Part shown: positions 25,282 through 27,453 of the stretch, piece after piece | Layout of the letters: each line of letters starts with the position of its first letter | Position numbering within the stretch: the stretch's first letter is position 1 | Source of the DNA: Fimbriosthenelais zetlandica | Lineage: Eukaryota | DNA: 64,000 nucleotides | Direction: 5' to 3' | Assembly: GCA_977030845.1 (NCBI GenBank) | Contig: OZ365115.1 | Coordinates: 15,252,001 to 15,316,000 of the forward strand | Position numbers and translations under genes: made by a program | Notes under the pieces: generated by a model | The model's input: the letters and a program-made list of their open reading frames with translations, nothing else | Databases searched by the model: none | What the model was told of the DNA's origin: nothing

Positions 25282-26027
25282 TTATATTTTTGAGTTATTG
25301 AAGGTGAAGGTATAGGTAATAACGCTGTGTTCTCGTGGTTCAGGGTGATCTTCATGAGTTATCATCTCCACCCGAGCATGGCTCTCTGTGACCTGGTACT
25401 GGTAGGCTGAATAATCAGAGAGACCAATCTCATCTCTACTCGCCTCAAACATGATCTCATTCGATCCCTGATACGGCGTCCATAGCCTGAATGTACATGT
25501 CTGACAAGAAGTAAAAGATATCCTTATTAATTTCAAATTAAATACAAAAAATAGATGGCTTTGACTTAAAATAATTATTTACCAAGACATAATTTTAATT
25601 GAATTAATATTTTCTATTTGATGGCAAGTCTCACACATTACCTCATCAGAGTCACATTGAATCTGGTAACTCTCCTCATATGACCATATGACGTCACCAT
25701 CCATGGACGCTGTGACGTCATGTATTAACGTGTCATGGAAATGTGTCTTCTGCTCGTTCAGCCTGTATAACAAGTCAAAACCCACAGACATAATAGAACA
25801 TCAGCCAGAATTTGGTATTTCTCTTTTCTATCTAGACTATAGGTCTTTTTTCTCGAACATTCTCTCTATATTTATTCTCTATAGATCACTCACTTTCTCT
25901 CTCACTCACTATCTCTTCCTCCTACTCTCTATTTCTCTCTCTTTCTCTCTCCCTTCCTTCCTTCCTTCCTTCCTTCCTCCCACCCACCCCTCTCTCCCTC
26001 TCTGTCTCGATCTGCATGTCTCTCTCG

Positions 26028-26088
<61 letters not shown>

Positions 26089-27147
26089 CCCTATCTCTCC
26101 TTTGTACCATAAATGAATGTTTTTTCATCTTACACGGGGTAGAAGTAGGCCTCGGGTATCCAGATGCTTGATGATTGTAGTTGAACATGTGTGATACCTC
26201 CGTGATGTACAGGGGCCCACGATATCCGCGGATCATTCCATGTCTTAACATACCACATGTCAATTAATTAATTATAATTGGCAACTAATTTATGACAAGT
26301 ACTTCTTCAATTGAAATTGCAAAAAACATAGTAAAAAAACTTCAGTATAGCCTACATGGACGCATATAGACAGATGCCATTGAACCATTGTAACTAATAT
26401 TTTTAAAACTTTTAATTTTTACAAATTTACAAAACCGACCTGTGTCTTTACACATGTTGTTAATACTACACTACATTTAGAAAATACTTGTGTAACTTAC
26501 AAAATAGTTTCTGGCCCTGAGGGTGATGGTGTTGGAGACAGGGTTATAGTCGTGTAGAGCGACCATGGAGAGTGAATGATGTATAGTCACAGGTTCACTC
26601 ATGTTTACTATGGGTACCTGCAATAAAATGTACACCAGTCAAATATTAATAATGAGAAACAGAAATTAGGAGAAGATACAGATACCATCTTCAATGCGAC
26701 CGTAGGCTACGTGAAACTAACGCTTGACCTCCACTTCCTGCAAAACATTATGAAACTATTTTTTAGGAAACTATTTTCGGCTCTTGTCCATGCACATAGT
26801 TCCTCTAATATCTTGACATATTATTAAGATTCAAGAATATCTTTTAAAAGATCCCGAGATGCATGGAAACTTACTGTTTTATACAAATTACGTTCCAGTA
26901 AGTGCACCAGACGACCCATCCTGTACCACGGTGCTACGTCCTTCGAGGTTTCCCTGGAAATATTAAAAAGAATATCTGATTATTATTATAAAACAGATAA
27001 TGTTGAAGCCAATACACACTCGCCATAAAAGACTGACGATTACATAAAGTAAATTACTTACTGACGATTCCTTCTTCTAAAACCCAACGCTTGGATTGAA
27101 GTCATCATTAAGAAAAGTAATCCAAAACTTCTCCAGAAAGTGTTCAT
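25282..27147 (-). CDS. Secreted acetylcholine-binding-protein-like (Cys-loop ligand-binding domain only) protein, 6 coding exons, 243 aa
   Basis: Exons 27062-27147, 26875-26953, 26501-26617, 26134-26243, 25642-25762, 25282-25500; GT-AG and phase-consistent (732 nt). Signal peptide MNTFWRSFGLLFLMMTSIQA. LBD landmarks: RLVHLLERNLY helix, VPIVNMSEPV, TWNDPRISW, GGITHV, IWIPEAYFY, DGDVIW, C..C-TFRLWT and a final VITYTFTF strand, then a stop with no TM helices. Confidence 0.85.
25880..26092. repeat. (CT)n/(CTTC)n microsatellite in an intron of the AChBP-like gene
   Basis: Visible directly. Confidence 0.95.
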
Positions 27148-27453
27148 CTTGGATTTTTTTTTCTCTGCCTGCAAAGAAACAATATTTGTAAATAAAATCT
27201 TAACAGAAATGAAATAATTAATTTCTAATCATTACTTGAAAATGTTAATGTCATAAGATGTGCAGGCTTACTGGATTAAAGCAATATAACCTACTTATTT
27301 ATGATAGAATATATTTGGGGTGTCTGCCTGCTGTCCGTCTTCCTTGCGTTTCAGATACTTGGCATATATTTTCCCTAACACATGGATAGCTATAACAATA
27401 GAGAGAAAAGTCGCAGAGTCCATTATTTGTAGAGGGGTGGGGATATAATATGA

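Follow-up and report, generated by a model that had tools for sequence, protein, structure and literature searches.

A candidate six-exon gene for a secreted, histidine-rich ligand-binding domain with a five-residue Cys-loop in Fimbriosthenelais zetlandica

Introduction

Can the extracellular domain of a nicotinic acetylcholine receptor (nAChR) lose its channel, most of its Cys-loop and much of its acetylcholine pocket and still be encoded by an intact gene, and what might such a protein bind? The question is raised by a locus in the worm Fimbriosthenelais zetlandica (assembly GCA_977030845.1, contig OZ365115.1), which occupies positions 27147 to 25282, on the minus strand, of a stretch of 64,000 nt without any N (15,252,001 to 15,316,000 of the contig), hereafter called the window. 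An earlier note, made from the letters of the window alone, had described here a secreted ligand-binding domain (LBD) of the Cys-loop receptor type without a transmembrane (TM) region, with a collapsed Cys-loop and a high histidine content, and had suggested that it might be an undescribed secreted pentamer. Soluble LBD-only proteins, the acetylcholine-binding proteins (AChBPs), are well known, and where a soluble substitute for the binding site of a nicotinic receptor is wanted, they are the standard choice.

We favour, with a probability of roughly 50%, the reading that the locus is an intact six-exon gene for a secreted, LBD-only and fast-evolving AChBP-like protein, a non-cholinergic offshoot of the nAChR expansion in lophotrochozoans. 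Below we give the gene model and the similarity to the LBD family on which this reading is built, and then the anatomy of the Cys-loop and of the ligand pocket, the relatives of the gene and the points that speak for other explanations. All genome-wide searches were made in the worm's own assembly (447 Mb in 79 contigs).

Gene structure

Conceptual splicing of six minus-strand exons yields an open frame of 732 nt, or 243 codons plus a TAA stop, in agreement with the intact 243-residue frame that had been proposed. All ten splice sites of the five introns are canonical, with GT donors and AG acceptors; four of the donors read GTAAGT or GTAAGA and the fifth GTAATG. Exon 1 (27062..27147) opens with the ATG at 27147-27145, encodes residues 1-29 and ends in phase 2 at the donor CA/GTAAGT. 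The N-terminal helix of the domain (RLVHLLERNLYKT) is assigned to exon 2 (26875..26953, residues 29-55), and strands beta1-beta2, with an Arg at the loop D position, to exon 3 (26501..26617, residues 56-94). The most conserved portion of the chain is the 110-nt exon 4 (26134..26243, residues 95-131), which runs from the W-x-D-x-R-x-x-W motif to loop A (IWIPEAYFY). Exon 5 (25642..25762, residues 131-171) covers strands beta4-beta6 with the loop E region and ends with C167 and the residues DSDE, while exon 6 (25282..25500, residues 172-243 and the TAA) contributes C173, loop B (RLWTPYQG), loop F, loop C (THEDHPEPREH) and strand beta10. A polyadenylation-type hexamer, AATAAA, follows 155 nt past the stop codon (25121..25126, minus strand). 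The exons have 36-51% GC, with 50% GC at third codon positions (GC3), and the introns 23-42% GC.

The N-terminus of the protein is short and basic and then hydrophobic, and the stretch at residues 3-24 is the sole hydrophobic one of the chain. It resembles a signal peptide, with its hydrophobic core at residues 8-19 and a possible cleavage after IQA. Of the convertase-like RRNR site that the earlier note had placed past the signal peptide, the basic run stands: the residues RRRNR follow the hydrophobic N-terminus.

At its other end the frame stops right after beta10, where the paralogues run without an intron into the first transmembrane helix, M1. A search of the 64-kb window with PF02932, the TM domain, gave no match, and home-built M1-M3 and M4 profiles found nothing in its six frames (best E about 1), which bears out the reported lack of a TM region. 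The four TM helices that follow the LBD in a full receptor do not follow it here. One could still suppose that the six exons form only the 5' portion of an ordinary receptor gene with TM exons that lie elsewhere or were missed, given that many paralogues have their LBD and TM parts on separate exons. We consider this very unlikely: the TAA is in frame directly behind beta10, no plausible donor was seen on reading the sequence between beta10 and the stop, the channel profiles are silent in the window, and three unrelated genes lie within 4 kb downstream on the same strand.

Two further observations concern the untranslated parts of the gene. Upstream of the ATG, at a distance of 21 nt, stands a sequence much like a good acceptor (tgtttctttgcag/G; 27148-27175, minus strand), and the gene may have a non-coding 5' exon. 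Intron 4 holds, at 25880-26090, a long CT/GA-rich tract of low complexity, including a perfect dinucleotide run of 52 nt at 26031-26082; its GC content is higher because of this tract.

Family membership

The assignment to the LBD family, also made in the earlier note, is carried by the conserved exon and by the spliced protein. Exon 4 alone matches Pfam family PF02931 (Neur_chan_LBD) with 35.5 bits against a cut-off of 26 bits (E 9e-9, profile positions 56-90). In the PDB it matches nAChR chains, with a best E of 7e-5, and more weakly the chains of cephalopod chemotactile receptors. For the whole protein, a paralogue open reading frame (ORF) of the worm's own genome served to collect 79 full-length alpha-like nAChRs, from which we built an LBD hidden Markov model (HMM). 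The spliced protein scores 33.3 bits with this model, whereas the best of 1000 shuffles reaches 6.3 bits. The alignment covers residues 47-168 and crosses the exon joints 2/3, 3/4 and 4/5 with nothing more than a 2-residue gap and a 3-residue insertion, and hhalign aligns the spliced protein to the LBD profile with a probability of 92.7% (E 4e-7).

The C-terminal half was placed with MAFFT --add and with a second HMM made from 20 canonical paralogue exons of the same genome. Exons 5 and 6 together score 12.9 bits with the latter, a score reached by none of 2000 shuffles (p roughly 5e-4 to 1e-3). Exon 6, searched in the PDB at E up to 10, matches only two Aplysia AChBP chains, with E about 1, from loop B to loop C in the same order; the alignment pairs ...H-Y-S-C-C-P-E-P of the AChBP with ...H-E-D-H-P-E-P of the worm protein. 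The language-model features of this exon cluster with Neur_chan_LBD fragments at 0.94, and in a six-frame scan of the window, cut into 3472 pieces, the top matches to LBD profiles are exons 4, 5 and 6. The whole chain is best read, from these profile comparisons, as a single LBD of the Cys-loop receptor superfamily.

Beside exon 4, the last eight in-frame codons of intron 3 (26244-26267, minus strand) read LIDMWYVK and recall the canonical beta2/loop D strand, down to the very Trp missing from the spliced protein. In the genome scan, the Pfam match at the place of exon 4 takes in this region and rises to 39.4 bits. As a coding extension of exon 4, the eight codons were rejected, being closed by a TAA and having no AG acceptor; an exon boundary of earlier times may have left them behind, or the likeness may be due to chance.

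Cys-loop

The protein has exactly two cysteines, C167 and C173, which fall on the canonical Cys-loop pair in every alignment, including that of hhalign, and form a putative disulfide. In the spliced product they enclose five residues, C-DSDET-C, so that the collapsed loop reported earlier recurs in our gene model. Compared with the canonical spacing of 13 residues, the alignments have an 8-residue gap between the two cysteines; the loop has no Pro, and the F-P-F-D core (the F/Y-P-x-D motif) is absent.

The motif spans intron 5 (25501..25641, minus strand; 141 nt, 22.7% GC), which lies inside the Cys-loop with the donor GAG/GTAATG and the acceptor ttttacttcttgtcag/A. Because the alignment gap coincides with this intron, the length of the loop depends on it. 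A search for FPxD-like coding sequence in all frames of intron 5 found none. The only other GT donor, TTG/GTAAAT, was tried and judged less probable: joined to the strong acceptor at 25500 it leads out of frame to a TGA, and to stay in frame it would have to pair with a weak, A-rich acceptor across an intron some 60 nt long, a combination derived by hand. The 60-nt extension that would lengthen the Cys-loop has an intron-like GC content of 25%, and with it the score with the paralogue HMM falls to 11.0 from 12.9 bits. We regard C-x5-C as the best gene model for the sequence at hand.

The length of intron 5 is a multiple of three, and the intron shares its frame with exons 5 and 6 and has one in-frame stop. 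It sits one codon before the second Cys, while a subset of the nAChR paralogues (loci L023, at G000:C27:13365900-13367000, L024 and L026) has an intron 3-4 codons past the second Cys (C-x-x-K/gt...). Because the positions relative to this Cys differ, intron 5 is not the same intron as that of these paralogues.

Ligand pocket

We read the pocket residues against canonical alpha-type paralogues, whose loops have the sequences G-S-W-T-Y-D-G and Y-x-C-C-x-E-P-Y. Two of the five aromatic-box residues typical of AChBP are left, the Tyr of loop A and the Trp of loop B, and loop B is longer by one residue, an inserted Pro. The canonical Trp of loop D is an Arg. Loop C reads ITHEDHPEPREH: His220 takes the place of Tyr190, Asp222-His223 stand at the positions of the vicinal Cys-Cys of the tip, and the position of Tyr198 falls within a 2-residue insertion, R-E-H. 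The vicinal cysteines that mark an AChBP are missing, as the first reading of loop C had it.

Acetylcholine binding, doubted from the outset, is unlikely on this residue analysis because two of the five box residues remain and the vicinal disulfide is gone, though the cation-pi Trp stays. The protein might still be an AChBP of the cholinergic or amine-binding sort, a buffer for transmitter that uses the loop A Tyr and the loop B Trp with His in place of the lost aromatics. A His at the Tyr190 position can stack, and Alvinella Alpo4 offers a precedent, having kept its aromatic cage without a vicinal Cys-Cys (PMC10338036). Set against the three lost box residues, the lost disulfide, the Arg in loop D and the Pro within loop B, this explanation has little probability in our judgement.

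Histidines are enriched, as had been noticed, the exact number being 14 where about 15 had been counted. They make up 6.3% of the mature chain of 223 residues, about 3.7-fold the mean of 1.7% in the 79 LBDs, among which the maximum is 5.0%. Three lie in or beside loop C, and three others (H138, H140 and H145) in the loop E strands, encoded by exon 5.

The domain is also acidic, with a pI of 5.7 and a net charge of -9 at pH 7, and loops F and C are rich in Asp and Glu. Such a composition would suit a secreted LBD with a role other than the capture of small ligands or metals, either as a matrix or biomineral protein or as a decoy that binds, or co-assembles with, proteins or toxins. Non-synaptic roles are known in the AChBP family: in the amorphous calcium carbonate-binding protein (ACCBP) of Pinctada, the AChBP fold has been re-used for an ion- or mineral-related role that involves no transmitter. 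Another report describes a haemolymph AChBP of 60 subunits (PMC3423370). In the searches of representative proteins and of the PDB made with exon 6, none of them aimed at ACCBP, sequence similarity of the worm protein to such proteins was not detectable, nor does it have a low-complexity or repeat region of the kind typical of matrix proteins, and we hold a matrix or decoy role to be improbable.

Relatives in the genome and in public data

The worm's genome has more than 150 PF02931 exon matches. The nAChR family has undergone massive expansion, and aberrant combinations of domains are numerous in it. Many paralogue exons match exon 4, which starts just before W-x-D, over nearly its whole length, with identities of at most 43%. 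The same 110-nt exon is carried by vertebrate nAChR genes. This sharing of exon 4 points to an origin by gene duplication rather than by retroposition. For exons 5 and 6, a search for paralogues in the genome returned self-matches only. The gene appears from these searches to be a single-copy orphan.

We also sought the orthologous locus by way of its neighbour, an L-gulonolactone-oxidase-like (GULO-like) gene; the ORF of a GULO exon matched only two short JGI fragments, at 60-65% identity. A conserved alpha-like nAChR ORF from elsewhere in the genome (L022, G000:C1:53082530-53083576) has counterparts with 97% and 93% identity in public Logan and ENA assemblies (P0006 and P0007); public data thus include either the same species or one very closely related to it, from which the orthologous locus might be had.

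Comparison with known proteins

In layout, the predicted protein is like the AChBPs of molluscs and of the annelid Capitella: a signal peptide, its cleavage being deduced from the hydrophobic N-terminus, is followed by the LBD alone, which ends at beta10 without TM helices. It shares with them the loop A Tyr and the loop B Trp, and with Aplysia AChBP an order-preserving similarity that runs from loop B into loop C and takes in the P-E-P past the tip of the latter. Unlike AChBP, it is His-rich, is without the vicinal Cys-Cys, the Tyr pair of loop C and the Trp of loop D, and has five residues in a Cys-loop that in AChBP has 12-13. With E about 1, its sequence kinship to Aplysia AChBP is not detectable beyond the level of the superfamily.

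Surveys of lophotrochozoan genomes have counted LBD-only genes, and LBDs without a Cys-loop, within the expanded nAChR family (Jiao et al. 2019, PMC6896357). The worm gene resembles these genes in its lost TM domain, its aberrant Cys-loop and its setting amid hundreds of lineage-specific nAChR-type genes. The surveyed genes are counts from automated annotation, given without anatomy; the worm gene, by contrast, keeps the cysteines and deletes the loop between them, and is a single-copy orphan where that family forms tandem clusters.

[quoted passage not shown] The Cys-less Pro-loop receptors have lost the cysteines, yet their loop has kept its length and its F/YPxD motif, and they retain the TM domain (PMC4795631, PMC9874803). 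The worm protein is their reverse, with both cysteines present but the loop, its Pro and the TM domain lost. No response to acetylcholine is given by those nAChR-like receptors of annelids and cephalopods that have no Cys-Cys tip (PMC10338036). Like Alpo4 and the cephalopod chemotactile receptors, the worm protein has an nAChR-derived lophotrochozoan LBD without this tip; unlike them, since they are full channels with a normal Cys-loop, it is predicted to be soluble.

The novelty claimed in the earlier note is accordingly narrower than it had been put: LBD-only and Cys-loop-less genes had been counted before (PMC6896357), whereas we found no description of a protein that combines an AChBP-like layout and histidine enrichment with two kept cysteines, the deletion of the loop between them and an aromatic box that has been taken apart.

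Proposed origin and role

Under the reading that we favour, an intron-containing gene of the nAChR type would have been duplicated during the lophotrochozoan nAChR expansion, and the copy would have diverged until, save for its best-conserved exon, no paralogue or homologue could be recognised. Coupling the LBD to the pore is normally the task of the beta6-beta7 Cys-loop. Having no channel left to couple, this loop may have been trimmed to a five-residue hairpin, with the pair of family cysteines still closing it. The pocket for acetylcholine would have been dismantled by the loss of the Trp of loop D, of the two Tyr of loop C and of the vicinal disulfide, and loop C may now be a strap rich in His, Asp and Glu (H-E-D-H-P-E-P-R-E-H). 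The ORF and its ten splice sites are intact although the sequence has diverged beyond detection from every paralogue, which would argue for long-term constraint. What the sequence shows is the anatomy of the gene, its family membership, the lack of TM exons, the replaced residues and the histidine enrichment; that the gene is transcribed and spliced as modelled, that its product is secreted and forms pentamers, and what it binds are inferences.

Several results weigh against this reading. Neither exon 5 nor exon 6 alone has a PF02931 match; the best shuffle of exons 5 and 6 scores 12.6 bits, close to the real 12.9 bits; and hhalign gives the C-terminal half alone a probability of 37.6%, its similarity to the family being weak there. 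A phmmer search with exon 6 in 1.84 billion representative proteins found no credible homologue. Its five matches were discarded as spurious: they are tandem-repeat proteins (DUF11, cadherin, fn3, WD40), scored by summing short beta-strand matches. An ATG-started ORF over exon 5 gave no candidate in a word-indexed collection. Searches of sequencing runs with the whole gene, and with the last exon plus its 3' flank, listed none, a result that does not prove the gene silent. The five-residue loop follows from an intron that was placed by its sequence and has a mediocre donor (GTAATG), and the idea of metal or pH binding comes from composition and nothing else.

These results lend weight to the main rival of the favoured reading, namely that the locus is a relic, silent or in decay: a piece of an LBD that stayed behind when part of an nAChR gene was duplicated, and that makes no transcript or no stable protein and owes its odd features to drift. 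The empty sequencing-run searches, the lack of any orthologue or paralogue found for exons 5 and 6, the marginal family likeness of the C-terminal half and the massively expanded nAChR family with its many aberrant domain combinations are all as a relic would have them. So is the deletion from the Cys-loop of the Pro/FPxD motif, which Cys-less receptors reportedly keep (PMC9874803). On the other side stand the stop-free frame of 243 codons with its ten canonical splice sites, a start like that of a signal peptide, a stop exactly at the domain boundary with a poly(A) hexamer behind it, and the contrast in composition between exons and introns with a GC3 of 50%. Both family cysteines and the fold-defining W-x-D...W-x-P motifs are retained as well, and neutral divergence of such depth would be expected to have broken the frame. 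We rate the relic as unlikely, while giving it more weight than any other alternative to an intact gene for a secreted LBD. As an unexpressed relic, the locus would merely be another by-product of the nAChR expansion.

If the gene is indeed intact and secreted as an LBD, the loss of the pocket residues implies that the protein most likely binds a ligand other than acetylcholine at the subunit interface. Our preferred guess is a divalent metal, or a ligand bound in a pH-dependent way, because the loop C strap is rich in His, Asp and Glu and the domain as a whole is His-enriched and acidic. The most specific form of this idea is a secreted pentamer in which the former pocket, with H220, D222, H223, H229 and the His of loop E, has been rebuilt as a metal- or proton-sensing site between subunits and the Cys-loop is a minimal hairpin closed by a disulfide; we put it forward as a speculation with the odds well against it. 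If true, it would be the first soluble protein of the pLGIC fold to take an inorganic ligand, and nature would have demonstrated with it that the fold can do without its Cys-loop. A natural AChBP fold whose Cys-loop has five residues and whose pocket is of the His/acidic kind would reveal the extent to which a scaffold freed from the channel can be re-tooled, and the protein would offer a minimal-loop template for engineering. With this gene, the nAChR expansion of lophotrochozoans, which is largely uncharacterised, would gain a concrete case that can be put to the test.

Neighbouring genes

The three genes downstream of the LBD gene, all on the minus strand, are unrelated to it. The exons of the GULO-like gene lie at 19132-21952 and encode FAD_binding_4 and ALO domains; weak tblastn matches of our gene model at 19.1-19.3 kb proved to be GULO exons and not an LBD. 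A full-length gene for U4 spliceosomal RNA is found at 22847-22988 (Rfam RF00015, 118 bits). Closest to the LBD gene, about 500 nt downstream of its stop codon, is a gene for tRNA-Tyr (GTA) at 24685-24779, predicted by ARAGORN and by Rfam RF00005 (57 bits); its length of 95 nt suggests that it contains an intron.

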